Source: Mytilus trossulus (lineage: Eukaryota). From it: DNA of 64,000 bases. A model generated the notes under the pieces. It was not told the origin of the DNA. It searched no databases and saw only the letters and a list, made by a program, of their open reading frames with translations. Positions 770-58,844 of this stretch are shown here, piece by piece. The DNA is taken from contig NC_086380.1 of assembly GCF_036588685.1 (NCBI RefSeq), forward strand, positions 76,136,001 to 76,200,000, written 5' to 3'. Positions within the stretch are counted from its first letter, which is position 1; the number at the start of each line of letters is the position of its first letter. Position numbers and translations under genes: made by a program.

Positions 770-2428
770 ATGGCATCAGCTAGTCTGTGTGATCCTTGCT
801 CTGAAGCTGATAAGTCATTAACTGCAACAAAGTATTGCTCTGACTGTGAAGAACAACTTTGTAGAGACTGTGGGGTATCACATTGCCGATCCAAAGCCTT
901 CAAATCTCACCATGCTATCGACCTGTCGGCCATCGGATCCAATATCCTTATATCTGCGAAGAAAAGGTGCAATGACCATTCAGAAATGATATTGGATTAT
1001 TACTGCACAGATCATGAGATCGTATGTTGTAGAGCCTGCATATCTAATGAACACAGGGTTTGTCAGAACGTACTCCCGTTGGAACTTGCCTCGAATGATG
1101 TTAGAAAGTCTGCACTGTTTAACGATGTTATGGAAGACATAACTCATCTTATCACAACATTGAATGCTTTAGAAAATAACAGACAGTCAAAATTACAATC
1201 AATGGAGGAATCTAAATCAGCAATTACTAAGAAGATCCGTGCAGTGAAATCCAAGTTTTTGAAACAAATTGACGATTTGGAGCGTGAATTAACGACCAGT
1301 TTCTCGTCTCTACAACGAAAACATGAAATGGAAATCAACAAACAAAAGCAAGAAATATCACAAGTCTTGGTCGATGTAGAGGAAAACAAAAACAAAAAGG
1401 ATTTTTTCAGAGATCATGGATCAAAGAATCAGCTTTTTGTATTCTTGCGACAACAAGTATCATATATTGATAGCACCGAAGCTAGGATTCAACAGATGAT
1501 ATCCAATTCACAAGAAATCAATATTATCTTTGATGAAAAGAAAGACGTCAAGCTTGAATCTTTTGGGTCCCTGATAGAGTATGTCCAACCTTGTCTAGTT
1601 CAATACAAACCACGGAAATGTCACCATGCCCAGATAAATGCAGAACAAATGAAATACATTATTTGGTTTGAGAAGGATACAGGGTTAAAACTTGAAATAG
1701 GGGAAACATATGCTCTTCGAGATGTAAAAGTCACAAACGATAATACGCTACTTCTAACCAATACATCATCATCCTATCCCAAACTCTATGTTTACAGAGA
1801 CTGTTAAGATTACGAGACAGAGATAAGATTTTCCTCCGAACCTCATGGTGTTGCTGTGATACCTGGTACGGACAAAGTTGTTATTACCCTCCCTAACCAG
1901 AAGTCTATACAATTAATAAATACTAAATATTTGACAAAGAGCAACACAGTTAACGTTGGATTTACATGTGTTGGGATCACTGCTGTGCGTGACAGAATTT
2001 ATGTTGGTGGTGTACATGGTGTAGGAGGTATTATTAAAATATTAGACACCAATGGGTCAATTTTGAAAACAATGAAACAAGAATCTGATTGTATTTGTTT
2101 CAAAGGATACGATGGTAGAAAAGAAAAATTGATTGTTAGGTGTCTTGACAAACTCCTTTGCATCAAATTGGATGGAACACTAGTATACAGTAAGGCCATT
2201 TCAGGAATATCAGGTATAACACTTGATCGACAGGGCAATCTCTATTTCTGCGATTACCATGGCAGCAACATTCAAAGAATATCATCAGGTGGGAAATGCA
2301 GTGAAAAAATGCTGTACAAAGACAATGGTTTTAACAAACCGTATGGAATGAGTGTTAACAATGGCTTCACAAAACTGTTTGTTATACATAATCATTATAA
2401 GTGTGTATAGAAATGCAAGTACTTGTAA
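770..2428 (+). pseudogene. Copy 1: RING-less B-box/coiled-coil/NHL-like propeller (TRIM-like) gene with premature stop
   Basis: ORFs 770-1807 and 1856-2410 are in the same frame. TAA at 1805-1807 replaces AAA (RDC*DYE vs RDCKDYE in paralogs). A second nonsense TAG at 2408-2410 lies just before the ancestral KCKYL-TAA end at 2428. This is the most diverged full-length copy. Confidence 0.88.
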
Positions 2429-2862
2429 AAACTTGAAAAGTTATATTCGGATTTTTATAAAATTGTGTTATCCATATGTACTTAGTAAATATATCTTGTT
2501 TGTATGTTTTTTTTGTACAATTTTAGATTTTCATTTGATGTTTAGAAGAAAATAACAATATAGGTCAAATTCAAATTTAATTATGTCGTCTGGCATGGCG
2601 TTATTTTAAAGGAAGGCGTTGCACATTGACACATAGTTCAAAACGTCATGACATAGCAAATCCAAATCTATGTTTGCTGTTTAAAAGTCATAAATCGATT
2701 GAATAAAAAAAAATCCGGGTTACAAGATAAAACCGATGGAAACTCATCAACTATATAAGAGGGAAACAAAGAAACAAGATAACACTGAAGTGCATAAAAA
2801 AAGCAAGCGACAATTTGAAACACAAATTAAAGGAGAACAAAAGAGGAACAGAAAGACATTTG

Positions 2863-2896
<34 letters not shown>

Positions 2897-2898
2897 GA

Positions 2899-3120
2899 AA
2901 AAAGTAAAATCACAAAAATACTGAACTCAGAGGAAAATCAATTTGGAAAGTCCATAATCACATGGCAAAATCAAAAAACGAAACGTTTCAAAAACGAATG
3001 GACAAGAACTGTCATATTCCGGACTTGGTACAGGCATTTTAAAATGTAGAAAATGGTGGATTAAACCTGGTTCTATAGCGCTAACCCTCTCACTTTAATA
3101 ATAGTCTCATCAAATTCCGC
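2899..3120 (-). mobile_element. SINE-like insertion (family B) with 5-bp TSD
   Basis: Flanked by TACGA (2894-2898, 3121-3125) and absent from the paralogous flank of copy 7 (~48045). A reverse fragment lies at ~37025-37165. Confidence 0.75.
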
Positions 3121-4444
3121 TACGATAGCAAGTAAAAAGATTTAAGATAAGTGTGCAAAAAAAAAACCCAGTTAAACGCATATACACAAAAAGTCAGAAA
3201 AAAGGAAGAAAAAACAAACAAAAAACCCTGAACAAAAACAAACAGAGATTGAAATTCCAAACTCTTAAAAAAAAGAAATACATAAAAATAACAGTAAAAC
3301 AGAAATGACAAAAAGGTGTAGATTCAATATATGAAATAAGAAAATAATAAGTAAACAACTCATTTCCGCTCAATATATTTAAAATCTTACTTTTTTAAAG
3401 TAGATAGTTGAGTGCTCTGGATTTTTTTAAAGTATCTGTTGTATGTCAATTTTGGTGTTCACTCTTATATTGTGCATCAATAATTTTTCTGTTATCTACA
3501 CTTATCGAATATGTCAAACGGAAATATTTTATTCTCCGGATTCAATTTCTTGTACATTTGAAAGACCAACAAGACATATAAACCTGTATTTTGGTGACAC
3601 TTAAGCTTATAAATGGATTAGCCAGAGTAAAACGTATACCAAGATCTTGTATTAGCATTGCTTAGCGAAATGACAAGGGGTCACACGGGATACTCGTAGA
3701 CTTATTGTATTCCGATGAGCACAAAAAAATGAAATTTAAATTTAATTCAAGTATCTAAAGTTCTTGTATATATTCCTGATGTTGAATTTCCTATTATAAT
3801 TTTCTTGATATAAGGTTGTTGCTCACAAGGAAGCTATTAAATCTAGAGTTCCTAGTGGTGATGACGAAATAATCTCTTCGTAAATTTAACGGTCGCCAAC
3901 ACGAGTTGGTTGACCGTTACGGAATATCCGTTTCACAGATGATATCGGAGATGTTCCTAATGTTGTTGCTACAATCTCGTTCCTTTCTTTTAATGAACTT
4001 TATCAAATACTAGATAAGACTAGAAAGAAAAACATGGCGTTACCGTTCATATTAGCTCACAATCTTCCTAGCTACGAAAGGGGCATGCATTTCTGTTAAG
4101 GAACTTTGTTTCATTTTGAACTAATAGGAGTTAAGAGGTAATATCGAAATAAAAAAAGAACTTAATTACAGATATCGTTTAGTTTATTTGAAAAAATAAT
4201 AATATGGGTCACCGATGAGTTAAAAAAGATATTTCAGTTTTAATGAAAAGAAATAGTTTTTTTGGCTTAAAGGGAGATAACTTGTAGCTTTTGTGTTGAT
4301 ATAAATATTTTAAAACTCAGTTTGGGCTAAACAAAAATTATTTTTTGGGTTGATTTCATAAAGTAAAAACTAATAGTGTAATAGATATAACTTGTAATGA
4401 AAGCATTTTTTACTGATTTTTCTTTTGTTCCCTCAAAACTCTTT

Positions 4445-4520
4445 AAGTCACGGTATCGAAAGTGCGATTTGTTTGATTGGTCTATTTCGCTTGTTGCACG
4501 TAGAGTAAATGCTTTAACTT
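4445..4520 (+). other. Remnant of the intronic part of the cassette upstream of copy 2
   Basis: cacggtatcgaaagtgcgatttgtttgattggtctatttcgcttgttg resembles cactgttaggaaagtgcgaatcgtttaaatgatcgatatcgcttgttg in the other cassettes. No exon or donor is seen upstream. Confidence 0.55.
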
Positions 4521-4992
4521 CCACGAACAATAGGAGATTGCTAACTTCTTAGAAATAGTTGGTGTCTTGTTTAAAATGGACTTGCAGTATGAAATTTATA
4601 AAATAAAGCAAGGTTCTTTCAATAAATTTACTGAGTTTATTTATAAAATCGAGTCAAAACCAAAAACACCCACGTACAGGAAAATATAAATTGATAGGAC
4701 GAGAAGAGAAACACCAATGAACCGCACAAACAAAGGACTATCACTGAGCACCATAAATATAGTTTGTCCAATTATGTATCGCATTGATTTCTCCTGTTTT
4801 CAGTCCTGATTAACAGCTATGACCTTCTGAACATTGGTATTCTTATTTTGTACTTTTTTAAAGAGGATATTTTCAATGTAATCATTTCCCACCCAGTGTA
4901 CAAAGCACAAATGTATATCCCTTGCGAAAAGGCAATTATATCATTGTTTCGTTTTGTAGATTATCTCTTACTAAAGAATCTTGTATACCAAC

Positions 4993-5640
4993 TGTAACAT
5001 TTCTATATGTTAGGACGAGTGTGTTATGTAATTGTATCAGGTTTACATGCATAAGTATTTTCACCCATGTCCATTTGATACAGTTAGAGAACATCAGAGA
5101 TATTAATTAAGATATATATTTAGATTTCTTTTTTGACTAGTGAGCCCTAATGATTTGCATAAGGTGCCCTAGTAAATTTATGTAAGGTGCACGGAACGCT
5201 AGGAGCCCAGATTACCGGAGCATTCGGATTTCCGGAGCACCCGGATTTCCGGAGCACGGAATACACGGAGCCCGGCTGCCATAGTAGTTTATAGTTGTAT
5301 CCGGACTTGTAGAAGTAGCATAAAAGAGAGAAAAAGCGTGAGATAAAGGAGGAGAAAGAATTTATAGTGAGAAGAGGACAGTTACGTTTGGAGAGTAGAG
5401 ATGAGAACTGTGTTGTTGAGCCTGAAGTTAGATGTACATTTTGTTCTACTTGTAACTGTGTTAAAGTCGTGTGATTTTAATAATACATTATTGTACTTTT
5501 ATTCAAATTCGTGTTTATGTTCACTTTCAAGACTTCGTTCAGACTGCATTAGGCTCCATTTATATATTGATGTGACCAGGATTCCCTTAATCACGCTACC
5601 AATAGATTTCTAGAGTACCCTGTTAAAGATTATACTTGGC
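4993..5640 (+). mobile_element. Possible LTR-like fragment
   Basis: Starts tgtaac and contains a local GC-rich block of ccggagcac/cggatttc repeats and a GA-rich tract. No clean CA end or TSD was found. Confidence 0.3.
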
Positions 5641-6464
5641 ATTTGTCGTCCGTGTACAAGTGAATGGCACGACATGCAACTTATACACCCCAAAACATAG
5701 CACAAACACAGCACAAACACACGGATACACATCTTAGTTTAAAGTTGCATCATAACTTCTTTTTCGTCACACAAAGAACCATAAGACTATAAAATTATAC
5801 CGATTCGTCCCTTCAAAAATCAGGCTTAAAATTTATCTCAAAAACAAATATCCAATAAAAAATGCTAAATACGTATACAAGGTATTAATCTTAACTTAGG
5901 CACAATTTATATGGACCGATGGAACTAAATATAATTCTAACACAATTCAGATGCTTTTCATCGTTCTTGAACTTTGACTTGTTGAGAGTCAATACACCAT
6001 TTCCTTTTTGACTGTTCTTTATTTACACACTTGAACAAAATCTGATGAACAATCTAAGATGGCTCCCTGACGACTTTATATTAAGTTATTAACATCTGGT
6101 AATCCGAACATTTCGTATCAACACTACGTCAATATATTCAAACATTTATTATAGTTTATTAAAAGCTCTGAGAGATTTCTTGTCAAAGATATATTACTAA
6201 TAGTGTATTTGTGGTACATTCACGTCACCATCTTTATCATCATTACCTCTTTTTCAGTTATTATTTTTTCATCTTTTTTCAATAAATTAAATCTTAAAGT
6301 ATTGTCAATTCTGATTATTTTTGCATGCTTGTATTTATATTGTGTTGTAATTCATTGTTATTTGGAACGGGCCGCATAAGTATGGTTTACTTAAACTTGT
6401 GCCTAATCTATTTTACTTCGAGTAAATGCAATATGTAAAAAATTCAAACAAAACATGCGACACT

Positions 6465-6897
6465 TAAAAGAGGGACGAAAGATACCAAAGGGACAGTCAA
6501 ACTCATAAATCTACAACAAACTGACAACGCCATGGCTAAAAATGAAAAAGACAAACAGAAAAACAATAGCACACATGACACAACATAGAAAACTAAAGAA
6601 TAAACAACACGAACCCCACCAAAAACTAGGGGTGATCTCAGGTGCTCCGTAAGGGTAAGCAGATCCTCCTCCACATGCGGCATCCGCCGTGTTGCTTATG
6701 TGATTTCAAATCCGGTAAATAGTCTAATTCGGTAGGTCAAATTAATGAAAAGGAAGGGGATTGTAGTTACGACGTAAGGAACATATCCGATATCATTTGT
6801 GAAACGGTTATTCCATAACGGTCAACCAACTCGTGATGGCGTCCGTAAAATTTACGAAGGGACGATTTCAACTTCACCATTTGGAACTCTTGATTAA
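6465..6897 (-). mobile_element. 3' end of a Penelope-like retroelement (RT C-terminus + 3' UTR)
   Basis: The minus strand encodes NQEFQMVKLKSSLRKFYGRHHELVDRYGI, followed by gcttacccttacggagcacctgagatcacccc. Older + strand copies lie at ~3810-3985, 48815-49260 and 59570-59985 (3' flanks of copies 1, 7, 8). Confidence 0.7.
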
Positions 6898-6930
6898 AAA
6901 TCGTTATCTTTTTGGAAGATCTCACGTTTG

Positions 6931-7560
6931 TGACATATATATCAATTATATGGGCATTTTTATAAATTTTCTGTTTACAAAACTTTGAATTTTTCGAAAA
7001 ACTAAGGATGTTCTTACCCCAAGGAGTAGATTACCTTAGCCGTATTTGACACAACTTTTCGGAATTTTGGGCCCTCAATGCTCTTCAACTTTGTATTTGT
7101 CTGGCTTTTAACTGTTTTGATCTGAGCGTCACTGATGAGTCTTATGTATTCGAAATTCGCGTTTGGCGTATTAAATTATAATCCTAGTACCTTTGATAAC
7201 TATTAACACCACTAGGTCGATGCCACTGCTGTTGGACGTTTCGTCCCCTAGGGTATCACCAGCCCAGTAGTCAGCACTTCGGTGTTGATATGGATATCAA
7301 TTATATGGGCTTCTTTTTTTTTAATTTTCTGTTTACAAATCTTTGAATTTTTCGAAAAACTCAGGATTTTCTTACCCCCAGGAGTAGATTACCTTAGCCG
7401 TATTTGGAACCACTTTTTGGAATTTTGGGTCATCAATGCTCTTCAACTTTGTATTTGCTTGGCTTTTTAACTGTTTTGATCTGAGCGTCACTGATGAGTC
7501 TTATGTAGACGAAACGCGCGTCTGGCGTATTAAATTATAATCCTGGTACCTTTGATAACT
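6931..7560 (+). mobile_element. Non-LTR retrozyme-like tandem (~1.75 units, period 359 nt)
   Basis: Direct repeat with hammerhead cores at 7132 (degenerate: GAC>TTC, GAAAT, GUU) and 7491 (intact). Unit size and type I hammerhead fit the retrozymes described in mussels. Confidence 0.8.
7475..7534 (+). ncRNA. Type I hammerhead ribozyme, intact core
   Basis: Stem I tttgat-(ctga)-gcgtca pairs with tggcgt-attaaa. CTGATGA at 7491-7497, stem II GTC-ttatgta-GAC, GAAA at 7511-7514, short stem III AC-gcgc-GT (palindrome ACGCGCGT). GUC cleavage is predicted after 7522. Confidence 0.88.
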
Positions 7561-7990
7561 TTTGTGAATGATCATTATATCGAGCCAATTTAAGTAACTA
7601 TAAGGTATTTATATATTTCTTTCTGGTCGCTTTAGAGTATACTCGACGTGTCAACAAGACGACTCATTTATAAAACGGTATTCACTATGAATGGTTTACT
7701 GTCGGTAGTTTTAAGTCATATACCATTCCAATCTTATAACAAAACGCCGTTCTGCTATTAGTTAACGGATGGTTGTTTTTTTCTTCTTTAAAAAGGAAAT
7801 TGAATCTTCAATTCTAGAATGGTGAACATCTTATGTACAAATTTGCATGCATGAATTGATAAATTGTAACTGCTAAAACTACTCTATAAAATTGGCTTGA
7901 ATACAGAAAATGAAGAAAAAACCTTTTGATTAGAAACGTGAAGAACACATTTCATTTTTATTTACTATTTTTTTTTCCAGAAATCATTCT

Positions 7991-9640
7991 ATGGCATCAA
8001 CTAGTTTCTGTGATCCTTGTTCCGAAGCTGACAAGTCTTTAACAGCAACAAGGTATTGCTCAGACTGTGAAGAAAGACTTTGTACAGACTGTGCAGAATC
8101 ACATTGCAGATTCAGAGCTTTTAAATCTCACCATGTTATCGACCTGTCGTCCATTGGATCCAATATTCTTATGTCCGCGAAGAAACACTGCAATGTTCAT
8201 TCAGAAATGATATTGGATTATTACTGCACAGATCATGAGATCGTTTGCTGTAGAGCCTGCATATCTAGTGAACACAGGGTTTGTCAGAACGTTCTCCCAT
8301 TGGAACTTGCCTCGAAAGATGTAAAAAAGTCTGCACTGTTTAATGATGTTATGGAAGACATAATGCATCTTATTACAACATTGAATGCTTTAGACAATAA
8401 CAGAGAGTCAAACTTACAATCAATAGAAAAATCAAAATCAACAATAACTAAGAAGATCCGAGCAGTGAAATCTAAATTTTTGAAACAAATTGAAGATTTG
8501 GAGCGTGAATTAACGACCACTTTGTCATCTCTCCAACGAAAACATGAAATCGAAATCAACAAACAAAAGCAAGAAATATCGCAAGTCTTGGTCAATGTTA
8601 TAGAAAATAAAAACGAGATGGATTTTTTGAGAGATCATGGATCTAAGAATCAGCTCTTTATATTCCTTCGCCAACAAGTAACAAATATTCATAGTGCTGA
8701 GGCAAAGATTCAGCAGATAGTATCTGATTCACAAGAATTCGATATAACCTTTGACGAAAAGAAAGATGGTAAGCTTGAGTCTCTCGGGTCACTGTCAGAG
8801 TATGTTCAACAATGTCAAGTTCAATACAAACCAAAGAAATTTCAACAAGCCCAGATAAAGGCGGAACCAATGAAAAACATTCTTGGGTTTGAGCAGGATA
8901 CGGAAGTACAACTGAAAACTGGGGAAAAATATGTTCTTTGGGATGTGTCTATCACACATGATAATAAGCTACTCCTCATTAATAAATCGTCAACATATTC
9001 AAAACTGTATGTTTACAGAGACTGTAAAGATTATGAAACAGAGATAACTTTTTCCTCCGCACCTGTTTTTGTTGCTGTGATACCTGGTACGGACAGAGCT
9101 GTTATTACCCTACCTAACGAGGGGTCTATACAATTTATAAATACGACAACGATGACAAAGTCCGACAAAGTCAACATGGGATTTACATGTTATGGTATCA
9201 CTGCTGGACGTGACAGAATTTACGTTGGTGGTCAAGGTGGTACTATCAAAACATTAGACACAAATGGGACAATTCTAACAACGATTCGACAAGGATCTGA
9301 TGAAATTTTCTTCATGGTATACAATGATTTACAAGATCAGTTGATTGTTAGATGTGTTGGTAAACTCCTTTGTATCAAAGTAGATGGAACACTAGTTTAC
9401 AGTAAAGAAGTTTCTGGAATAGCAGAAGTAACACTTGATCGACAGAGGAACATTTATGTGGGCGGTTATGAGACCAACAACATACAAAAAATGTCATCAG
9501 ATGGAAGGATTTGTGAAGAAATGCTAAACAAAGACAATGGCATTGAACGTCCGTATGGAATGTGTTTTAACAATGACTTCACCAAACTGTTTGTTATTAA
9601 TAACGGTTGCAAATCCGTACATGTATTCAAATGCAAGTGA
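7991..9640 (+). CDS. Copy 2: RING-less TRIM-like protein (2 B-boxes, coiled coil, NHL-like six-bladed propeller), 549 aa
   Basis: Intact ORF with CDPC..CSDC..CTDC..H..H (B-box1), CNVH..CTDH..CCRAC..H..C (B-box2), a heptad-rich middle and C-terminal blades (CYGIT, RIYVGG, RPYGMCFN). Acceptor tttttttccag ends at 7980. Confidence 0.93.
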   Translation: MASTSFCDPCSEADKSLTATRYCSDCEERLCTDCAESHCRFRAFKSHHVIDLSSIGSNILMSAKKHCNVHSEMILDYYCTDHEIVCCRACISSEHRVCQNVLPLELASKDVKKSALFNDVMEDIMHLITTLNALDNNRESNLQSIEKSKSTITKKIRAVKSKFLKQIEDLERELTTTLSSLQRKHEIEINKQKQEISQVLVNVIENKNEMDFLRDHGSKNQLFIFLRQQVTNIHSAEAKIQQIVSDSQEFDITFDEKKDGKLESLGSLSEYVQQCQVQYKPKKFQQAQIKAEPMKNILGFEQDTEVQLKTGEKYVLWDVSITHDNKLLLINKSSTYSKLYVYRDCKDYETEITFSSAPVFVAVIPGTDRAVITLPNEGSIQFINTTTMTKSDKVNMGFTCYGITAGRDRIYVGGQGGTIKTLDTNGTILTTIRQGSDEIFFMVYNDLQDQLIVRCVGKLLCIKVDGTLVYSKEVSGIAEVTLDRQRNIYVGGYETNNIQKMSSDGRICEEMLNKDNGIERPYGMCFNNDFTKLFVINNGCKSVHVFKCK

Positions 9641-10570
9641 AAATATATGTCAAAGAATTTAGATTTCTTTATCAAAATGTAACTTATATACAAAAAGTAT
9701 AGTTTTTAGTCTAACTATGGAAGATGTTGGTTTTTTTACAATAAAACCTGACTTTTAGCAATGCCGCTCATTATTTGCATTTAAAAACTGTGTGAAGTTC
9801 TAATCTTTAATGTGTAATAAATACACGATAGTCTATCAAGAATTCATTTAGCAGTTTAAGACAAATTGACAATTAAATTAACCAGCTAGTTCAATCAAAG
9901 CAAGATATGATTTGTTCATTTTTTGATTATTTTTGTTTATGTGCACATCCTGTTTGTTTAAATCTTGTTTTTGTGAAACTCCTATAAATTTAAGCAACGA
10001 TGGTTTATCGATGCGTTATCATTGTTTACAGACAAACATGGTGATGTTCCAGCAGTTACAATAGCAAATAACATTCTGTTTAAATGCAAAATTCGTTTTT
10101 TGGAATGTCTATCTAAAGACTTTTAAAGAGTTTGCAGCGAATCTGAGAATCTGACTTATACCCATATATTATTCACGAAAGAGAATATTTTAGTAACTTA
10201 CTAATCTATCGTTTTCTCCTTTTATACTTAAAACAATTCCAATCGTTCTGCATAACCCTCTGTCTTACCCATGATTGCAACTGTCTGCGTTAGGGCACCT
10301 GTAATGATGATTATAAGTTTGTTCTGGTAAATTTTTAAAGTTAAATACAGAATTTTTTAATCAAACTTTTCCGTTCTAATGCTTTTTCTTGATCTTGATG
10401 TTTGTTTCTGTCAACGATTTATATCAATCCATTAAGGTAATCATGTTAAAAAGAATCACTGGCTACTGAAAAAGTTTGACATTATACTGTATGTTATAGA
10501 ATATATGTTGTTGTTTGTCTTTCCCCGAACTGTAACGGGTGTTTTAAATTGTCCATCATTGCGAATATAT

Positions 10571-11095: not shown

Positions 11096-11339
11096 CAGCA
11101 TAACACAGCTAAGTATGCTTTAACACATTTCTGTGTCACTAAACCTTTAAAACCTCAAAACGACAAAAAAACCTCTGCAGTCGCATGTATAATCATGATA
11201 ATTATGTATTGTAATATTTTAGTTATGTCTTTTTTTTATTTTTTAGCTTTTTTAGTTATCAAATTCTCACAAAAAAATATTCGATTTATTGAAAAATCGT
11301 TTTGCATTAAATTTTAAATTTGTTTGATTTATTAAACTA

Positions 11340-11600
11340 GACAATTAACAGCGCCACGTAGTTTTTAAAAATGTCATACATCAAACTTTATCATCCTTAT
11401 ATAATTTGTACATTAAGTTCTAGTATTGTCTTCAAGAACCAGTATAGCAAGTTAAACAGCAGAAAAGTCGTGGTTGATTTTGAATCTGTTGATCTCGTTT
11501 AAATCCAACAGGTAAGTCTTAATTTAGCAGTGTTATTATTTGTTTTGACGACGAGCTAATTTTAGGTTGATATGGTTTAAATCGAAAGTAAATAATTTCA
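11340..11600 (+). promoter_or_regulatory. Putative promoter + non-coding exon 1 cassette of copy 3
   Basis: cagcgccacgtag at 11349, conserved cttcaagaaccag, perfect donor CAG|GTAAGT (GT at 11512) and aaatcgaaagtaaa near 11580. The ETS motif is absent here. Confidence 0.6.
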
Positions 11601-13475
11601 TATTTCGTTCTTTATTGCGTTACTGTTAAACTATTACAATAAAATATTCCGTTTTTTTATAAATTCAATTTGGTTTCAAATGGATAAAGTTCTTACTGTT
11701 GGTCTACTATATAGAGACATCACTGTCAGAGAGAGTGCGAATCGTTTGAACAGCCGATATAGTTTGTAATAAGGAAACTCTTTACAATTATATTATATAT
11801 TTGTGCAGTGTGTTGTGTTGTATACACAAGATTCAATGTTCAGATTTTGTGAAATGAAGCAACACCTTGCAAATATCAAATGAATGAATGTATTAAATTA
11901 AGATGATGAAAGAAGGTCTGTGTTTAGGGAACGAACAAATATGTATTGAAAGTATTGAATGTATGCAAAAAATAGCCAGTGAGATTGATTTTTTACCTAA
12001 AATAAAAGATTGAAAAAGTATAAAAAATGGTAACCGCTGTTTTGTTTGGTAAAATTGAATTCAAATGATCGGAAGCCTCGAAATTGATTTTGATTTGGTT
12101 ATTCAGTTTAAAGATCGACTTGAAAATGGGCAGTTGGGCGATGTGCATCAGACATAACGGTCATTATAATCAAACAAAAGGTACTAATCAAAAGAGCCAT
12201 GACACGTTAGAAACCTTTCAGTGAATACAAGCTACAAATCTTAGCAGTAATAATTTTGAGAACATCATTACATGATCGAACATTTGGTGTTGATGGGAGA
12301 TCTTGTATTATTTTAGCAACTGTTAAAAAGTGAGGACGATTTATATCTTGAATTTTTATGTACTTTTCTGTGGTCTCCTTTTGAATATAGTATGCAGCCC
12401 TCCAGTTGTCTTTTAACTGTATGTGTCGTTAACTTATTGTCTCATTGAGATTAACGCAGATGTTTTACCAAAAATTCAGTTGGCCAATTGTATTTTAAAT
12501 ATCATCAAACGATCGTTATATTATACTAAACGTAAAAACTGTTTTTCACACCGCGATGCATCACAGCTGGATATGTGATATTTCTAATATTTTTTATGAA
12601 ATCACGCCTATGATAGTAAAAATGTTTTGTTTTATGTGGGGGGGGGGGGGGATTGATATGCATTACTAATATTCAATGCATGATTTTTTAATTCTAAGAT
12701 TTAAGCGTTTTACTTATAGATTGCCTCCGTCATAATAGGATATACAAGAAACATTACTTTTTTTGACTGAATTATTTCATCTAAATTAGATACATTTTTT
12801 TTAATTACACCAACAAACAATGTTATTTAACAATGATTTCCGTCGTTGTAATCAAATTCTGATATTGTGGTACACTACTCTGGGATGAATATAATCGTAG
12901 CTTAATCAAGCAGCCATTTTTATGTGAGTGGATCTCTGTTTTTATAGATTATGTGATAAATGACCTCATTAATCCAGTCAAGGAGTATCATAAAATGATT
13001 TACAAATAGCGGTTTGGTTTATAAAGTTGCTAAAGTTATCTTTCTTGAAACATAAGCAACTTCCATAACTACATAATTTTTATATAGTTTGTCATTGTCT
13101 CAGTTTTGATTAAAAATAAAAATAAATCCTAGCTTTAAAAAAAATAAATCGATCCTTTTCAAGGAAACCACACACACACTTTACCGTACTATGTGCCAAA
13201 CAAAGAATCTAGTTTCAAATACATAATGATACACTGTAATGTGACCAGTATAAATTCAAAGCGTGTTTATTTTTTATTGGTTAACTTTGGATTATTTGTC
13301 CCTTATTTTTGGTTTTCTGAAAAAATACTGCATTTTCTCTTTACCGTAGTGTAATCTTATCTTAGATCACAGTCTTTGTAATTTTGCAGTAATATTAAGA
13401 CTTTTGATTTTGCTATGCTTTACACTACTATTTCCATGCTCAGTCATATCTCATTTGTTTTCAGAAATTTTCTCT

Positions 13476-15124
13476 ATGGCATCAACTAGGTTCTGTGATC
13501 CTTGTTCCGAAGCTGACAAGTCTTCAACAACAACAAAGTATTGCTCTGACTGTGAAGAAAGACTTTGTACAGACTGTGATGAATCACATTGCAGATTCAA
13601 AGCCTTCAAATCTCACCATGTTATCGACCTGACGTCCATCGGATCCAATAAACTGATGCCTGCGATAAAAAACTGCAATGTCCATTCAGGGATGCTTTTG
13701 GATTATTACTGCACAGACCATGAGATCGTATGCTGTAGAGCCTGCATATCTAATGAACACAGGGTTTGTCAGAACGTTCTCCCATTTGAACTTGCCTCGA
13801 AGGATGTAAAAAAGTCTGCACTGTTTAACGATGTTATGGAAGACATGACGCATCTTATTACAACATTGAATGCTTTAGACAATAACAGACAGTCAAACTT
13901 ACAATCTATGAAGGAATCTAAATCAACAATAACTAAGAAGATCCGAGCAGTGAAATCCAAATTTTTGAATCAAATTGACGATTTGGAGCGTGAATTAACG
14001 ACCACTTTGTCATCTCTCCAACGAAAACATGAAATGGAAATCAACAAACAAAAGCAAGAAATATCGCAAGTCTTGGTCAATGTTATAGAAAATAAAAACG
14101 AGTTGGATTTTTTGAGAGATCATGGATCTAAGAATCAGCTCTTTATATTCCTTCGCCAACAAGTAACAAATATTCATAGCGCCGAGGCCAAGATTCAGCA
14201 GATAGTATCCGATTCACAAGAATTCAATATAACCTTTGACGAAAAGAAATATGGTAAGCTTGAGTCTTTCGGGTCACTGTCAGAGTATGTCCAACCATGT
14301 CAAGTTCAATACAAACCAAAGAAATTTCAACAAGCCCAGATCAAGGCAGAACCAATGAAAAATATTCTAGGGTTTAAGAAGGATACAGTATTAAAATTTA
14401 ATACTGATGTGGTAAAAAGTATTTTGAGTGTATCAGTGACGATAATAATAAGCTCCTCATTACTAATACATCATCATCCGATACCAAACTGTATGTTTAC
14501 AGAGACTGTAAAGATTATGAGACAGAGATAGCTTTTTCCTCCGAACCTCATGGTGTAGTTGTGATACCTGGTACGGACAGAGCTGTTATTACCCTACCTA
14601 ACGAGAATTCTATACAATTCATCAATACGACAAAGATGACAAAGGACAACACAGTTAACGTTGGATTTACATGTTATGGTATTACTGCTGGACGTGACAG
14701 AATTTACGTTGGTGGTACAGGTGGTACTATCAAAACATTAGACCCCAATGGGACAGTTCTAAAAACGATTCAACAAGGATCTAATAATATTTTCTTCATA
14801 GCATACGATGATATTCATGATCATTTGATTGTTAGATGTCAAGACAAACTCCTTTGTATCAAAGTAGATGGAACACAAGTATACAGCAAGGACGTCTCAG
14901 GTTTAGCAGGAGTAACACGCGATAGGCGTGGTAACATTTACTACGGTTGTTACTATGCCAACAACATACAGAGAATATCATCAGATGGGGAAAACTGTGA
15001 AGAAATGCTGAACAAAGACAATGGCATTTACCGTCCGTATGGAATGTGTTTTAATAACGACTTCACGAAACTGTTTGTAATTAATAACGAAGGTAAATCT
15101 GTTCGTGTATACAAATGCAAGTAA
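13476..15124 (+). pseudogene. Copy 3: TRIM-like gene with 1-bp frameshift, near-identical to copy 6
   Basis: The true ATG is at 13476, after the acceptor ending 13464. The sequence reads gtgac|gataat at 14440/14441 versus gtgacagataat in copy 6, so the span is 1649 vs 1650 nt. An assembly error cannot be excluded. Confidence 0.8.
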
Positions 15125-26230: not shown

Positions 26231-26505
26231 ATGACAGAATTTTAGTTGGTGGTGATTATGGTACTATCAAAACATTAGACATTAATGGGGCAATTCTAAA
26301 AGCAACCCAACATGGATTAAATTGTATTTACTTAATAGCATACGATGATATTCGTGATCATTTGATTGTTAGATGTGTTGGTAAACTCCTTTGTGTAAAA
26401 TAAGATGGAACACTAGTTTACAGTAAGAACGTTTCAGGAATAGCAGATGTAACACTTGATCAACAGAGGAACATTTATTTTTTTGTGGTTTTACAACTCA
26501 CAATA

Positions 26506-45895: not shown

Positions 45896-47557
45896 ATGGC
45901 ATCGGCTAGTTTATGTGATCCTTGTTCCGATGCTGACAAGTCTTCAACAGCAACAAAGTATTGCTCTGACTGTGAAGAAAGACTTTGTACAGACTGTGAT
46001 GAATCACATTGCAGATTCAAAGCCTTCAAATCTCACCATGTTATCGACCTGACGTCCATCGGATCCAATAAACTGATGCCTGCGATAAAAAACTGCAATG
46101 TCCATTTAGACATGCTTTTGGATTATTACTGCACAGATCATGATATCGTATGCTGTAGAGCATGCATATCTAATGAACACAGGGTTTGTCAGAACGTACT
46201 CCCATTGGAACTTGCCTCGAAGGATGTAAAAAAGTCTACACTGTTTAACGATGTTATGGAAGACATGACGCATCTTATTACAACATTGAATGCTTTAGAC
46301 AATAACAGACAGTCAAACTTACAATCAATGGAGGAATCCAAATCAACAATAACTAAGCAGATCCGAGCAGTGAAATCCAAATTTTTGAAACAAATTGACG
46401 ATTTGGAGCGTGAATTAACGACCACTTTGTCATCTCTCCAACGAAAACATGAAATGGAAATCAACAAACAAAAGCAAGAAATATCGCAAGTCTTGGTCAA
46501 TGTTATAGAAAATAAAAACGAGATGGATTTTTTGAGAGATCATGGATCTAAGAATCAGCTCTTTATATTCCTTCGCCAACAAGTAACAAATATTCATAGC
46601 GCCGAGGCCAAGATTCAGCAGATAGTATTCGATTCACAAGAATTCAATATAACCTTTGACGAAAAGAAAGATGGTAAGCTTGAGTCTTTCGGGTCACTGT
46701 CAGAGTATGTCCAACCATGTCAAGTTCAATACAAACCAAAGAAATTTCAACAAGCCCAGATAAAGGCAGAACCAATGAAAAATATTCTAGGATTTGAGAA
46801 GGATACAGTATTAAAATTTAATACTGATGTGGTAAAAAATCTTTTTAGTGTATCCGTGACAGATAATAATAAGCTCCTCATTACTAATACAGCATCCTCC
46901 GATCCCAAACTGTATGTTTACAGAGACTGTAAAGATTATGAGACAGAGATAGCTTTTTCCTCCCCACCTGATTGTGTTGTTGTGATACCTGGTACCAACA
47001 GAGCTGTTATTACCCTACCTAACGAGGGGTCTATACAATTCATCAATACTACAAAGATGACAAAGGATGGTAAAGTTGACGTTGAATTTACATGTTATAG
47101 TATCACTGCTGGACGTGACAGAATCTATGTTGGCGGTGGGGATGGTACTATCAAAACATTAGACACCAATGGGACAATTTTAAAAACAATTAAAACAGGA
47201 TCTAATCCTATTAACTTCATGGCATACAATGATTTACATGATGAGTTGATTGTAAGATGTCATAACAAACTCCTTTGTATCAAATTAGATGGAACACTAG
47301 TATACAGTAAGGACGTTTCAAGTACAGGAGGTGTAACACTTGATCGACAGAAGAACATTTATGTCGGCGGTTTCTATACAAATGCAAGCATCATACAAAG
47401 AATGTCACCAGATGGAGAAAATAGTGAAGAAATGCTGAACAAAGACAATGACATTTACCATCCGTATGGAATGTGTTTTAGCAATGACTTCACAAAACTT
47501 GTTGTAATTAATAACCATTCTCAGTCCGTATGTGTATATAAATGCAAGTACTTGTAA
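45896..47557 (+). CDS. Copy 7: RING-less TRIM-like B-box/coiled-coil/propeller protein, 553 aa
   Basis: Intact ORF ending KCKYL; acceptor tttttttag ends at 45885. Confidence 0.93.
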   Translation: MASASLCDPCSDADKSSTATKYCSDCEERLCTDCDESHCRFKAFKSHHVIDLTSIGSNKLMPAIKNCNVHLDMLLDYYCTDHDIVCCRACISNEHRVCQNVLPLELASKDVKKSTLFNDVMEDMTHLITTLNALDNNRQSNLQSMEESKSTITKQIRAVKSKFLKQIDDLERELTTTLSSLQRKHEMEINKQKQEISQVLVNVIENKNEMDFLRDHGSKNQLFIFLRQQVTNIHSAEAKIQQIVFDSQEFNITFDEKKDGKLESFGSLSEYVQPCQVQYKPKKFQQAQIKAEPMKNILGFEKDTVLKFNTDVVKNLFSVSVTDNNKLLITNTASSDPKLYVYRDCKDYETEIAFSSPPDCVVVIPGTNRAVITLPNEGSIQFINTTKMTKDGKVDVEFTCYSITAGRDRIYVGGGDGTIKTLDTNGTILKTIKTGSNPINFMAYNDLHDELIVRCHNKLLCIKLDGTLVYSKDVSSTGGVTLDRQKNIYVGGFYTNASIIQRMSPDGENSEEMLNKDNDIYHPYGMCFSNDFTKLVVINNHSQSVCVYKCKYL

Positions 47558-52264: not shown

Positions 52265-52546
52265 TTTTAACCAGGAAGTGTAACATGTGTAACTAGGCGG
52301 ATAACAGCGCCACGTAGTGTTTAAAATCGACAAACATCACACAGTTGTTAACGTAGGTTTTACTTCAAGAACCAGTATTTCAAGTTAAACAGTATAACCG
52401 TCGTGGTTTTATTCTTAATCGGCATACTTTACGTAAATAAATCAGGTATGTTTTCTTAAAGTTTTGCAATGGGTTTTTTTTTAACGAAGAGCTAAACAAT
52501 GCTAAACTAGCTTATAAATGCAGATACTATTAAAACCGAAAGTAAA
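52265..52546 (+). promoter_or_regulatory. Putative promoter + non-coding exon 1 cassette of copy 8
   Basis: ccaggaagtg at 52271, cagcgccacgtagtgt at 52305, donor CAG|GTATGT (GT at 52446) and aaaaccgaaagt at 52532. Confidence 0.62.
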
Positions 52547-52804: not shown

Positions 52805-52860
<56 letters not shown>

Positions 52861-54740
52861 CGAATACTTTTAGTTTTCGCACTCTAACTTTAGTAAAAGT
52901 GAATATAAATCTATAAAATTTTATCACAAGGTTTATGACCACAAAAGGAAGGCTGGTATTGATTTTGGGAGTTTTGGTCCCAACATTTTAGGAATAAGGG
53001 GCCAAAAAGGGCCCAAATAAGCATTTTCTTGGTTTTCGCACATTAACTTTAGTTTAAGTTAATAGAAAGCTATGAAATTTTGACACAAGGTTTATGACCA
53101 CAAAAGGAAGGTTGAGATTGATTTTGGGAGTTTTGGTTTCAACAGTGTAGGAATTAGGGGCCAAAAAAGGGCCCAAATAAGCATTATTCTTGGTTTTCGC
53201 ACAATAACTTTAGTTTAAGTAAATAGAAAATAATGAAATTTAAACACAATGTTTATGACCACAAAAGGAAGGTTGGTATTGATTTTGGGAATGTAGGTAC
53301 CAACAGTTTAGGAATTAGGGGCCAAAAAGGGACCCAAATAAGCATTTTTCTTGGTTTTCGCACCATAACTTTAGTATAAGTAAATAGAAATCTATGAAAT
53401 TTAAACACAAGGTTTATGATCATAAAAGGAAGGTTGGTAATGGTTTTGGGAGTTTTGGTCCCAACAGTTTAGGAATAAGGGGCCCAAAGGGTCCAAAATT
53501 AAACTTTGTTTGATTTCATCAAAATTGAAAAATTGGGGTTCTTTGATATGCCGAATCTAACTGTGTATGTAGATTTTTAACTTTTGGTCCCGTTTTCAAA
53601 TTGGTCTACATTAAGGTCCAAAGGGTCCAAAATTAAACTTCGTTTGATTTTGACAAAAAATTAATCGGTTGGGGTCTTTGATATGCTGAATCTAAAAATG
53701 TACTTAGATTCTTCATTATGGGCCCAGTTTTCAAGTTGGTCCAAATCGGGGTCCAAAATTAAACTTTGTTTGATTTCATCAAAAATTGAAAAAATGGGGT
53801 TCTTTGATATGCCAAATCTAACTGTGAATGTAGATTCCTCATTTTTGGTCTTGTTTTCAAATTGGTCTACATTAAAGTCCAAAGGGTCCAAAATTAAACT
53901 TAGTTTTATTTTAACAAAAATTGAAATCTTGGGGTTCTTTGATATGCTGAATCCAAACATGTACTTAGATTTTTGATTATGGGCCCAGTTTTCAAGTTGG
54001 TCCAAATCAGGATCTAAAATTATTATATTAAGTTTTGTGCAGTAGCAAGTCTTTTCAATTGCACAGTATTGCGCAATGGCAAGAAATATCTTATTGCAAA
54101 ATATTGTGAAATAGCAATTTTGTTTTTAATTAGAGTTTTCTTTCTTTGTCCAGAATAGTAAGCAAGAAATATCTAATTGTAAGAATTTTTTTTATTTGGA
54201 GTTATCTTTCTTTGTCCAGAATCATCTTAAATCTTTGTTATATATACAATATACAATGTATATTCACTTTTTACTACCAACTGATAAATTAAAATAATCT
54301 TTACCATTCAGTGATAACAAGCAGTTTTTTTTACATCTTAATATTTTATGATGTATTTAAATGAGTAGTAATTGTTGCAAACTCCATTAGAAATTTTAAT
54401 TGAGATTAATTTTGGAATAAGGGAAAGGGGGATGTGATTAAAAAAATTGGGTTCAATTTTCTCATTTGAAATTTCATAAATAAAAAGAAAATTTCTTCAA
54501 ACATTTTTTTGAGAGGAATAATATTCAACAGCATAGTGAATTGCTCTAAGAGAAAACAAAAAATGTAATTTCATTAGAACACATTCATTCTGTGTCAGAA
54601 ACCTATGCTGTGTCAAATATTTAATCACAATCCAAATTTAGAGCTGAATCCAGCTTGAATGTTGTGTCCATACTTGCCCCAACCGTTCAGGGTTCAACCA
54701 CTGCGGTCGTATAAAGCTACGCCCTGCGGAGCATCTGGTT
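52749..54740 (+). mobile_element. Non-autonomous Helentron-type (HINE/pearl-like) element with internal tandem repeats
   Basis: Subterminal IR tttatacgaccgca (52751) / tgcggtcgtataaa (54702), short 3' hairpin, (GTC)n microsatellite, four ~160-bp repeats followed by alternating ~134/126-bp repeats, and a T-rich target. Confidence 0.8.
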
Positions 54741-55931: not shown

Positions 55932-56110
55932 CACCTTAGCCGTATTTGGTACAACTTTTTATTATTTTTTAGAATTTCCGGCCCTCAACGCTCTTCAACT
56001 TTGTACTTGCTTATGCTTTCTTACTGTTTTGAGCATCATTAAGTAGTCTATTGTAGACGGACAGCGCGTCTGGCGTTTCATGTTATAAGCCTGGCACCTA
56101 CTATAACTAT
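55932..56110 (+). mobile_element. Degenerate retrozyme fragment in the copy 8 intron (more decayed cores at ~54820-54875 and ~55586-55645)
   Basis: ccttagccgtatttggtacaact...gctcttcaactttgtac...gtctattgtagacggacagcgcgtctggcgt matches 7390-7560, but the catalytic core is mutated. Confidence 0.7.
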
Positions 56111-56154
56111 TTTGTCTGGTTCAGTTGTTGTCACCTTTGAAAGTTCTCAAACAT

Positions 56155-56803
56155 CTCCAACTTTGAATGTAAGTCATCATGACGTCTAGGTCATGAAGCA
56201 GTATCTAGCTCCAACTTTGAATGTAAGTCAACATGACGTCTAGGTCATGAAACAGTATCTAGCTCCAACTTTGAATGTAAGTCAACATGACGTCTAGGTC
56301 ATGAAACAGTATCTAGCTCCAACTTTGAATGTAAGTCAACATGACGTCTAGGTCATGAAGCAGTATCTAGCTCCAACTTTGAATGTAAGTCAACATGACG
56401 TCTAGGACATGAAACAGTATCGAGCTTCAACTTTGAATGAGAGTCAACATGACGTCTAGGTCATGAAACAGTATCTAGCTCCAACTTTGAATGTAAGTCA
56501 ACATGACGTCTAGGTCATGAAACAGTATCTAGCTCCAACTTTGAATGTAAGTCAACATGACGTCTAGGTCATGAAACAGTATCTAACTCCAACTTTGAAT
56601 GTAAGTCAACATGACGTCTAGGACATGAAACAGTATCGAGCTTCAACTTTGAATGAGAGTCAACATGACGTCTAGGTCATGAAACAGTATCTAGCTCCAA
56701 CTTTGAATGTAAGTCAACATGACGTCTAGGTCATGAAACAGTATCAAGCTCCAACTTTGAATTTAAAGTCAACATGACGTCTAGGTTATGAAACAGTATC
56801 GAG
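56155..56803. repeat. 54-bp minisatellite, 12 copies, with 216-bp higher-order structure
   Basis: Unit ctccaactttgaatgtaagtcaacatgacgtctaggtcatgaaacagtatctag. A variant unit (ggacat...cgagcttc...gagag) occurs at 56405 and 56621. Confidence 0.95.
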
Positions 56804-57188
56804 TACGGAACTTGATCTTTTGAAGTGTTAGTCTAAAATCATTTCGATCTTATACCATAAAAATTAACATTTAGGTAATCATTTACTCTGTGGTCGAGGT
56901 CATAACGCATCTTATAATAAATTGACTTTTTGACACAATCCCCATTTCCATTCTCAATTTTATTAAAGTTCAAAAAAATTGTTGTGACACAATCCTTGTC
57001 GTCTTTGGATCATTTAACATTGATTTGTTCTAACATAAACAAAATTCTAGGTACAAAATCGCACGCAGGATTCATTTGCTCTCTAATGCTACTTCTGATC
57101 AGAGAAACTTGCTTAGATACAGAAATCTAGTGAAATCTTTCGATTTTAGGAATTACAAAATATAACATATGTTTTCAGAAGTTTTTCT

Positions 57189-58844
57189 ATGGCATCAGCT
57201 AGTTTCTGTGATCCTTGTTCTGAAGCTGACAAGTCTTTAACAGCAACAAGGTATTGCTCAGACTGTGAAGAAAGACTTTGTACAGAATGTGCAGAATCAC
57301 ATTGCAGATTCAAAGCTTTCAAATCTCACCATGTTATCGACCTGTCGTCCATTGGATCCAATACACTTATATCAGCGATGAAAAACTGCAACGTCCATTC
57401 AGAAATGATGTTTGATTATTACTGCACAGATCATGATATCGTATGCTGTAGAGCCTGTATTTCTGATAAACACAGGCTTTGTCAGAACGTACTCCCGTTG
57501 GAACTGGCCTCGAAGGATGTTAGAAAGTCTGCACTGTTTCACGATGTTATGGAAGACATGACGCATCTTATCACAACATTGAACGCCTTAGACAATAACA
57601 GACATTCAAACTTACAATCTATTGAGAAAACTAAATCAACAATAACTAAGCAGATCCGGGCAGTGAAATCCAAATTTTTGAAACAAATTGACGATTTGGA
57701 GCGTGAATTAACGACCGCTTTGTCATCTCTCCAACGAAAACATGAAATCGAAATCAACAAACAAAAGCAAGAAATATCGCAAGTTTTGGTCAATGTCATA
57801 GAAAATAAAAACGAGATGGATTTTTTGAGTGATCATGGATCTAAGAATCAGCTCTTTATATTCCTACGCCAACAAGTAACAAATATTCATAGCGCTGAGG
57901 CCAAGATTCAGCAGATAGTATCCAATTCACAAGAATTCGATATTACCTTTGACGAAAAGAAAGATGATAAGCTTGAGTCGTTCGGGTCACTGTCAGAGTA
58001 TGTCCAACCATGTCAAGTTCAATACAAACCAAAGAAATTTCAACAAGCCCAGATAAAGGCAGAGCCAATGAAAAAAATTCTAGGGTTTGAGAAGGATACA
58101 GTATTAAAATTTAATACTAATGTGGTAAACTGTCTTATTTGTGTATCAGTTACAGATGATAATAAGCTGCTCATTACTAATATATCACCATCCGATCACA
58201 AACTGTATGTTTACAGAGACTGTAAAGATTATGAGACAGAGATAGCTTTTTCCTCCACACCTTATTGTGTTGCTGTGATACCTGGTACGGACAGAGCTGT
58301 TATTACCCTACCTGACGAGGGGTCTATACAATTCATCAATACTACAACGATGACAAAGTCCGACACAGTTAACATGGGATTTGGATGTTATTGTATCACT
58401 GCTGGACGTGACAGAATTTATGTTGGCGGTACAGGTGGTACTATCAAAACATTAGACACTAATGGAATAATACTCAAAACATTTCAACAAGGATCTGATT
58501 ATATTTACTTCATAGCATACGATGATATTCATGATCATTTGATTGTTAGATGTGTTGGTAAACTCCTTTGTGTCAAATTAGATGGAACACTAGTTTACAG
58601 TGAGGACGTTTCAGGAAAAGCAGGTGTAACACTTGATCGACAGAAGAACATTTATTTTGGCGGTTTTATGACCAACAACATACAAAGAATGTCATCAGAT
58701 GGAGAAAATTGTGAAGAAATGATGAACAAAAACAATGACATTAACCGTCCGTATGGAATGTGTTTTAACAATGACTTCACAAAACTGTTTGTTATTAATA
58801 ACCGTTACACGTCCGTATATGTATATAAATGCAAGTACTTGTAA
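57189..58844 (+). CDS. Copy 8: RING-less TRIM-like B-box/coiled-coil/propeller protein, 551 aa
   Basis: Intact ORF ending KCKYL; acceptor gttttcag ends at 57178. Confidence 0.93.
   Translation: MASASFCDPCSEADKSLTATRYCSDCEERLCTECAESHCRFKAFKSHHVIDLSSIGSNTLISAMKNCNVHSEMMFDYYCTDHDIVCCRACISDKHRLCQNVLPLELASKDVRKSALFHDVMEDMTHLITTLNALDNNRHSNLQSIEKTKSTITKQIRAVKSKFLKQIDDLERELTTALSSLQRKHEIEINKQKQEISQVLVNVIENKNEMDFLSDHGSKNQLFIFLRQQVTNIHSAEAKIQQIVSNSQEFDITFDEKKDDKLESFGSLSEYVQPCQVQYKPKKFQQAQIKAEPMKKILGFEKDTVLKFNTNVVNCLICVSVTDDNKLLITNISPSDHKLYVYRDCKDYETEIAFSSTPYCVAVIPGTDRAVITLPDEGSIQFINTTTMTKSDTVNMGFGCYCITAGRDRIYVGGTGGTIKTLDTNGIILKTFQQGSDYIYFIAYDDIHDHLIVRCVGKLLCVKLDGTLVYSEDVSGKAGVTLDRQKNIYFGGFMTNNIQRMSSDGENCEEMMNKNNDINRPYGMCFNNDFTKLFVINNRYTSVYVYKCKYL

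Follow-up and report, generated by a model that had tools for sequence, protein, structure and literature searches.

A recombining array of RING-less TRIM-like genes in Mytilus trossulus with hypervariable loops on one predicted face of an NHL-type propeller

Introduction

Diversified TRIM families with a B30.2 domain are known from vertebrates, and bivalves are known for large B-box gene expansions and open pan-genomes; the role and the working surface of the bivalve expansions had not previously been worked out. Here we analyze a 64,000-nucleotide stretch of Mytilus trossulus chromosome 8 (G000:C8, 76136001-76200000; genome 1.30 Gb), hereafter the window, which holds part of a tandem array of TRIM-like genes that encode no RING domain. 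A sequence-only reading of the window had proposed that these genes form a candidate innate-immune receptor system, in which a dimerizing scaffold of B-boxes and a coiled coil carries a propeller whose variable loops make up one binding face.

The array genes behave like those of the finTRIM and TRIM5alpha families, which are likewise multigene and partly tandem and combine a conserved antiparallel dimer of B-boxes and coiled coils with selected C-terminal surface loops (PMC2657112); in the array, the dimer is a prediction. The array proteins differ in having an NHL-type propeller rather than a B30.2/SPRY domain, in having two B-boxes, and in lacking a RING and hence any ligase activity of their own. 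Because they have neither a B30.2 domain nor a RING, they are not members of the finTRIM/TRIM5 group. Drosophila Brat also has no RING and shows the same RING-less, filamin-less domain order. Brat and NCL-1, together with the TRIM-NHL proteins (TRIM2, TRIM3, TRIM32/Thin, TRIM71/LIN-41, Mei-P26, and NHL-2), share with the array the order B-box1, B-box2, coiled coil, and NHL domain; they are its best structural matches, and the variable loops of the array are predicted to lie on their ligand-binding face (PMC9634614). These relatives regulate development, are conserved and present as single copies, and have a basic top that binds RNA, whereas the array comprises more than 50 paralogs with a neutral-to-acidic, Tyr/His-rich, and hypervariable top, no filamin domain, and no Pfam NHL match.

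The array belongs to the molluscan B-box expansion (PMC8382680, orthogroup OG708), and many Atlas clusters consist of molluscan proteins with B-boxes and an NHL domain. TRIM multigene families are prominent among the genes tied to oyster resistance to ostreid herpesvirus 1 (OsHV-1) and Pacific oyster mortality syndrome (POMS) (PMC6971885, PMC9437489). The array also resembles lamprey variable lymphocyte receptors (VLRs), the leucine-rich repeats (LRRs) of plant NLR proteins, and designed propeller or repeat binders, all of which place periodic, solvent-exposed variable positions on a rigid repeat scaffold; the variable positions of the array are enriched in Tyr. In the array, the diversity is encoded in the germline by the different paralogs and reshuffled through recombination or gene conversion; it is not assembled somatically, and the proteins are probably cytosolic. 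The literature that we searched contained no paper on site-specific diversifying selection on NHL propeller loops, on concerted evolution of the scaffold, or on this array.

Results

Hypervariable positions occupy alternate loops of the propeller

With the 549-aa open reading frame (ORF) of copy c2 as query, tblastn finds eight gene copies in the window, all on the + strand, of which five are intact (c2, c4, c6, c7, and c8) and three are broken (c1, c3, and c5; Table 1). The encoded proteins consist of B-box1, B-box2, a coiled coil, and a six-bladed NHL-type propeller, in this order. These copies confirm the tandem array of RING-less TRIM-like genes proposed earlier. The array reaches far past the window, and 37 intact paralogs were taken from the genome for the analyses of entropy, selection, and surface.

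Among the 37 paralogs, the column entropy is about 0.3 bit in residues 1-290, while in residues 300-549 it peaks at periodic short positions with up to 9-12 different residues per column. The five intact copies in the window show amino acid identities of 86.5% (B-boxes), 92.2% (coiled coil), and 75.0% (propeller); within the propeller, identity is 34% at 30 hypervariable sites defined a priori (see below) and 80.6% over the rest. The contrast between scaffold and propeller is thus real, but the earlier description of the scaffold as nearly invariant was overstated, since it is 87-92% identical. All of the motif variants that had been listed for the propeller (APVF/EPHG/APYC/PPDC/TPYC after FSS, NEG/NEN/YAM/DEG after LP, and the rest) are present in the translations.

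On the strands of the structural model, the hypervariable positions occupy every second loop (s1-s2, s3-s4, s5-s6, and so on), and the intervening loops are motifs conserved throughout the family. Because successive loops of a beta-meander alternate between two faces, the model places all of the variable loops on one face of the propeller. The following cues bear on which face this is. Strands s(4k+1) are the hydrophilic outer strands, and the loops after them are the longest. In the NHL domains of TRIM2, TRIM3, and TRIM71, blade 6 contains both the N- and the C-terminus, the latter on the bottom surface (PMC9634614); in the array propeller, the C-terminal strand ends on the face of the conserved loops. 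Taken together, these cues make the variable loops, by inference, the D-A and B-C loops on the top of the propeller, where Brat and LIN-41 bind ligand. The proposal that the variable positions lie on one face thus agrees with their alternate spacing, the identity of the face as the top being topological. In total, about 30 variable residues are distributed over twelve alternate loops, two per blade, and the 30-residue signature is unique in 33 of the 37 paralogs.

Tyr (11.4% vs 4.1%) and His (4.3% vs 0.8%) are enriched at the 30 sites, as are Asn, Thr, and Ala. In all 37 paralogs, the top-face loops carry a net charge between -6 and +1, counted from the sequence and not from an electrostatic map. 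A neutral-to-acidic face rich in Tyr and His appears to favor protein or other non-RNA ligands, with RNA possible; because the face is Tyr/His/Asn-rich and not basic, a protein ligand seems likelier than RNA. This composition bears on an alternative in which the paralogs are diversified RNA-binding regulators, each recognizing its own RNA motif, for example in transposon or viral transcripts, and repressing or sequestering it. The closest solved folds found by Foldseek are indeed RNA-binding NHL domains, the RING-less order of B-box1, B-box2, coiled coil, and NHL equals that of Brat, and the intergenic DNA of the array is rich in transcribed repeats. The variable face is, moreover, predicted to be the one with which Brat, LIN-41, Mei-P26, and NHL-2 bind RNA, but the tops of RNA-binding NHL domains are strongly basic (PMC9634614), and the array top is enriched in Tyr, His, Asn, and Thr, not in Lys or Arg. 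We consider RNA-binding regulators an unlikely explanation. The analogy with Brat and LIN-41 drawn in the sequence-only reading accordingly extends to the face and not to the ligand, the top of the array propeller not being electropositive.

The variable propeller sites are under diversifying selection

The pairwise NG86 ratio of nonsynonymous to synonymous substitution rates (dN/dS) is 0.27 for residues 1-290 and 0.49 for residues 291-549. Divided into classes by structure only, the odd loops (66 residues) show a dN/dS of 1.06, the even loops 0.32, and the strands 0.35. Since picking sites by their variability in the same data is circular, such sites were replaced by the structural classes and by sites defined in a second set of proteins, group B. 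This group comprises 70 proteins (P0050-P0120) from ENA/JGI metagenome contigs, with 43-46% identity to c2 and about 79% identity among themselves, and it forms a separate clade (support 0.998). The 30 most variable propeller positions of group B fall in the same loops as those of the array, 24 of them in odd loops and the other six being strand residues.

At these 30 a-priori sites, the M. trossulus array shows a dN of 0.505 and a dS of 0.220, a dN/dS of 2.29 (site-bootstrap confidence interval 1.31-4.14) in a test that uses no tree, and the proportion of nonsynonymous differences exceeds that of synonymous differences (pN > pS) in 97% of pairs. The remaining 220 propeller sites show a dN/dS of 0.36. 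A local mutation hotspot was ruled out, as dS at the hypervariable sites (0.22) is not raised. The results show that the scaffold and the propeller core are under purifying selection, with dN/dS of 0.27-0.36.

Codon site models give a concordant picture. The likelihood-ratio test of M1a against M2a gives a statistic of 6.5 in the N-terminal half and of 182 in the C-terminal half, where 10% of the sites have an omega of about 3. A FUBAR-like grid with P(beta>alpha)>0.9 finds 23 sites in the C-terminal half and 3 in the N-terminal half, with purifying selection at 136 sites in all. Among the selected sites within the propeller (residues 300-549), 15 of 22 lie in odd loops (Fisher p 2e-5), and 16 of 23 selected sites are shared with the group-B set (p 3e-12). 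All six blades, each analyzed with its own tree, reject M1a (p 2.5e-3 to 1.4e-9), with omega2 of 2.5-5. The claim that dN/dS exceeds 1 at the variable sites is therefore borne out by both the tree-free, non-circular test and the per-blade site models, and we conclude with high confidence that diversifying selection acts on one face of the propeller.

These data also speak to the possibility that the loop variation reflects relaxed constraint in a redundant, decaying family. Broken or truncated forms account for three of the eight copies in the window and, genome-wide, for about 27 of some 64 copies and fragments, and the odd loops taken as a whole class reach only about 1.06, as relaxation would allow. 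It does not account for a dN/dS of 2.29 with a confidence interval above 1 at the a-priori sites, nor for the class of omega 2.5-5 needed in every blade; 37 ORFs of about 549 aa have stayed open, with a scaffold omega of about 0.3 and the 136 purifying sites, and the same sites vary in the independent radiation of group B. We therefore disfavor relaxed constraint as highly improbable.

Three positively selected residues of c2, 387, 427, and 464 (nt 9149-9151, 9269-9271, and 9380-9382), recur with a spacing of about 40 residues. Each is the final loop residue before outer strand D, on the side of the conserved loops. They may represent a second, peripheral contact or an artifact of the strand boundary.

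Recombination among the copies

The N-terminal and C-terminal trees of the array conflict with high support, and the pairwise homoplasy index (PHI) is far below the permutation mean in both halves (p<0.001). A single whole-gene tree was dropped for these reasons in favor of partition trees, trees for single blades, and the tree-free test, and because recombination is pervasive, most weight was placed on the tree-free and per-blade tests. Synonymous divergence is lower in the N-terminal half (dS 0.19 vs 0.29). Although the coding sequences (CDS) share about 88% nucleotide identity, most copies have no alignable flank in common; the likeness among copies is limited to a stretch that starts some 20 nt upstream of the ATG and runs to some 100 nt past the stop. 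The conflicting trees, the PHI values, the lower N-terminal dS, and the similar CDS between unalignable flanks indicate that gene conversion or unequal exchange keeps the scaffold alike while loop diversity persists, as read from these sequence patterns.

The flanks of c3 and c6 are different in this respect: their upstream regions (11117-13454 vs 29966-33052) are 80-97% identical. Because of this similarity, c3 is taken to be a recent segmental duplicate of c6 that apparently gained its frameshift afterwards.

The array encodes RING-less proteins with an NHL-like propeller

No C3HC4 pattern is found in the six frames of the 64-kb window, no relative has a RING Pfam domain, and the ORF begins 6 residues ahead of B-box1. 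The Pfam model zf-B_box (PF00643) matches two stretches with 23.9-27.9 bits against a cut-off of 24.1, one of the three scanned copies falling just below, and the ANCHR-like B-box (PF22586) also matches near threshold. In an alignment of 94 sequences, the ligands of B-box1 (C7/C10/C23/C26/C31/C34/H38/H47) and of B-box2 (C67/H70/C79/H82/C87/C90/H95/C98) are invariant or nearly so. A profile of the 94 relatives matches TRIM28 over B-box1, B-box2, and the coiled coil, starting after the TRIM28 RING (E 1.3e-15), and the NHL-type 'Pizza' and PknD repeats at E of about 1e-8; the NHL domains of Thin and TRIM proteins are matched only weakly.

The AlphaFold2 (AF2) model has a mean predicted local distance difference test (pLDDT) of 80.8, and of more than 90 over residues 300-549. 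It shows a helix at 115-216 and a return helix at 219-246, which make up a coiled coil of about 100 residues, followed by 24 strands that form six four-stranded blades. The only link between coiled coil and propeller is a beta hairpin (248-274, pLDDT about 61-66), and Pfam matches neither a filamin/Ig domain between them nor a SPRY (B30.2) domain, the C-terminal domain being the propeller. On the propeller itself, Pfam yields only weak matches to SBBP, Mala_s_1, and Vgb_lyase. Because Pfam alone gives no NHL match, the fold was named from AF2 and Foldseek, whose best hits are the NHL domains of TRIM71, Thin, TRIM2, Brat, Mei-P26, LIN-41, and TRIM3 (E 1e-14 to 1e-12, TM-score to target 0.74-0.78). 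The modeled propeller can be called NHL-like only on the grounds of its fold and of weak profile matches. No signal peptide is seen in the ORF, and the proteins are probably cytosolic.

A predicted antiparallel homodimer of the coiled coil

Two copies of residues 100-290 were predicted to form a homodimer with an ipSAE of 0.70, compared with 0.00 for the best of three controls. The runs show at least 90% contact agreement and a partner pLDDT of at least 76. The predicted contacts are antiparallel (131 with 196-200, 138 with 189-193, and 128 with 203), like those in solved TRIM dimers. In the calibration of the tool, 21 of 30 solved homodimers attained the mark and none of 23 monomers did, the figure for eukaryotes being 17 of 29; the pass seen here may come from the tool's memory of solved TRIM dimers. 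The model thus agrees with the dimerizing scaffold proposed earlier.

Extent of the array in the genome

The chromosome-8 array spans 1.13 Mb (75.33-76.46 Mb) and contains at least 51 copies or fragments, about 31 of them full-length without stops. An unplaced 4.2-Mb scaffold (C65, 1.38-2.15 Mb) carries at least 13 further copies, all on the - strand, of which six are intact. Copy counts in the genome are lower bounds, as 79 of 2350 first-look candidates were scored. Among the matches scored, the closest to c2 (88%) sits on C65; the cluster on this scaffold could be a divergent alternative haplotype of the chromosome-8 array or a separate locus. At 72.3-72.4 Mb there is an older cluster (58-66% identity). 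RefSeq names for these loci are 'E3 ubiquitin-protein ligase TRIM71-like', 'TRIM45-like', or 'uncharacterized'.

Three chromosome-8 loci, L020 (75623936-75625582, -), L021 (75640928-75642574, +), and L023 (75612058-75613704, +), have identical or nearly identical CDS, and L020 is the sole minus-strand copy seen in the chromosome-8 array. The near-identity of the CDS and the inversion of L020 point to a very recent duplication with inversion.

The array members have no relative of at least 90% identity in the other Mytilus proteomes, and at most 34% of the 31-mers of the c2 stretch are present in any public run. Orthologs of at least 90% identity exist in M. edulis and M. galloprovincialis for a distant paralog (P0040 cluster). 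The missing close relatives and the low 31-mer sharing would fit fast turnover or presence/absence variation, although they are not proof of it. Presence/absence variation is known in Mytilus (PMC7653742).

Gene structure and expression

A polypyrimidine tract followed by CAG lies about 10 nt upstream of the ATG of each copy. A conserved block of 82-83 nt is found 1.3-4.8 kb upstream of c3, c6, c7, and c8; it contains no ATG and ends with CAG|GTAAGT or CAG|GTATGT. Because an ATG-less conserved block with a splice donor is combined with an acceptor before each ATG, the gene model is a short, putatively non-coding exon 1 followed by a single exon with the entire ORF. The two exons were analyzed separately and never joined for any search. 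An upstream coding RING exon was ruled out, as exon 1 has no ATG and the window no C3HC4 pattern, and the RING-less claim therefore stands for the ORF as well as for every frame of the window.

Tandem-repeat arrays fill the spacers and introns at 16021-16725, 30750-31021, 52873-54022, and 56155-56800 (41-bp x17, 53-bp x5, 161/135-bp, and 54-bp x12). A 193-aa ORF at 31384-31965 was rejected as a gene: it is a translated 135-bp tandem repeat (four copies, 98% alike), and its Pfam 'ATE_C' match is spurious.

Raw RNA reads from four runs with the same species label were aligned to window positions 4200-10100; for three runs that belong to one study, about 6% of each run was read. The fourth run covers positions 7943-9518, which correspond to the c2 CDS, at a depth of 1-5x and is confined to them (strand not resolved). 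No splice-junction reads were reported at the low depth obtained. Transcription of c2 is thus weakly shown. A repeat upstream of c2 (6367-7745, especially 7199-7556) is heavily transcribed, reaching 865x at 7352-7548 in run X23. Many of the repeat reads go back by about 358 nt (7556 to 7199, 56 reads in X23); such reads represent joints of circular or tandem RNA, which a hammerhead-bearing retrozyme is expected to produce.

Table 1. Positions of the array genes, of the parts of c2, and of the splicing features in the window (nt counted from its first nucleotide)
Feature	Position (nt)	Strand	Description
c1	770-2410	+	Pseudogene; in-frame stops (1 TAG, 1 TAA); most divergent copy, 72.5% aa identity to c2
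c2 3' splice acceptor	7955-7980	+	Polypyrimidine tract and CAG, about 10 nt before ATG; same signal at every copy
c2	7991-9640	+	Intact, 549 aa
c2 B-box1	8009-8131	+	aa 7-47
c2 B-box2	8189-8284	+	aa 67-98
c2 coiled coil	8333-8728	+	aa 115-246
c2 six-bladed propeller	8888-9637	+	aa 300-549
Candidate non-coding exon 1 of c3	11430-11511	+	82 nt, no ATG, donor CAG|GTAAGT
c3	13476-15124	+	Pseudogene; frameshift near 14441
c4	20929-22578	+	Intact, 549 aa
c5	25196-27428	+	Pseudogene; 5'-truncated (begins at aa 113), broken up by insertions
Candidate non-coding exon 1 of c6	30279-30360	+	82 nt, no ATG, donor CAG|GTAAGT
c6	33074-34723	+	Intact, 549 aa
Exon-1 block, four in tandem, upstream of c7	39776-44385	+	Starts at 39776, 41271, 42774, and 44304; period about 1.5 kb
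c7	45896-47557	+	Intact, 553 aa
Candidate non-coding exon 1 of c8	52363-52445	+	83 nt, no ATG, donor CAG|GTATGT
c8	57189-58844	+	Intact, 551 aa

Discussion

In this study, we find that the best overall explanation of the locus, which we favor with moderate confidence, is a recombining array of RING-less propeller proteins whose variable top face serves as a binding repertoire. That the family functions as a binding repertoire is, taken by itself, probable. A specifically immune function is a more tentative assignment, drawn from analogy and held at a little short of an even chance. Three observations had been named in the sequence-only reading as speaking against its overall interpretation, namely dN/dS at or below 1 at the variable sites, scattered or buried variable residues, and no expression. 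None of the three was observed; we found a ratio above 1, variable residues in alternate loops, and expression amounting to reads at 1-5x in one of four RNA runs.

Under this explanation, the antiparallel coiled-coil dimer would present two propellers, and because the coiled coil is kept alike among paralogs, they may also heterodimerize. Each paralog would bind a different variant of a fast-evolving intracellular ligand, which is likelier a protein than RNA. The output might come through B-box-driven assembly, through a RING-bearing partner, or through sequestration. The likeliest driver would be viruses or other intracellular parasites, engaged in an arms race of the TRIM5 and finTRIM kind.

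Several points weigh against this explanation. Pervasive recombination troubles the site models, which is mitigated by the tree-free and per-blade tests, and the codon models themselves are self-written (GY94-type), use grid approximations, and assume fixed tree shapes. The assignment of the variable loops to the top face is topological and not taken from model coordinates, and the Pfam NHL model PF01436 gives no match to the propeller at E<=1. Group B, which supplies the a-priori sites, is molluscan by an Atlas lead only. On the side of expression, the c2 CDS has no reads in the three RNA runs of one study (about 6% of each run read), and some reads of the fourth run carry at least 4 differences and may stem from an allele or a close paralog.

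The same expression data enter into an alternative that accepts the selection and assigns it another driver, either intragenomic or reproductive conflict (meiotic drive or its suppression, germline transposon control, sperm-egg conflict, or mitochondrial inheritance conflict under doubly uniparental inheritance) or a response to transmissible neoplasia. An extensive tandem array with fast turnover and an omega above 1 is also a hallmark of drive and reproductive genes, and three RNA runs without reads are compatible with restricted expression, for example in the germline. The array members have no relatives of at least 90% identity in other Mytilus species, and the distant paralog has them. 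The nearest diversified TRIM-like analogies, however, act against viruses (PMC2657112), and in oysters TRIM families follow resistance to viral disease (PMC6971885, PMC9437489). We judge a conflict or neoplasia driver to be improbable, and prefer a binding repertoire shaped by intracellular parasites.

A bolder version of the binding repertoire, which we regard as speculative and rather doubtful, is that molluscs possess at least two parallel, germline-encoded cytosolic repertoires on the NHL top face, each with twelve loops and about 30 residues. Gene conversion would keep the scaffold uniform so that paralogs can pair, and the pairs formed from a few dozen genes could in this way amount to hundreds of bivalent specificities directed at viruses or other intracellular parasites. 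If true, the NHL-based repertoires would join the B30.2-TRIMs, the LRR receptors, and the immunoglobulins as a new structural class of diversified immune receptors.

The present analysis maps the variable surface of a bivalve B-box expansion to two loops per blade on what is predicted to be one face of an NHL-type propeller, with selection above neutrality, and finds it mirrored in what appears to be a second molluscan radiation. The map gives residues to swap, paralog baits for ligand discovery, and a locus at which presence/absence variation and disease resistance can be studied in a genus used in aquaculture. Another suggestion from these data is that an NHL propeller can work as an evolvable scaffold for binding.

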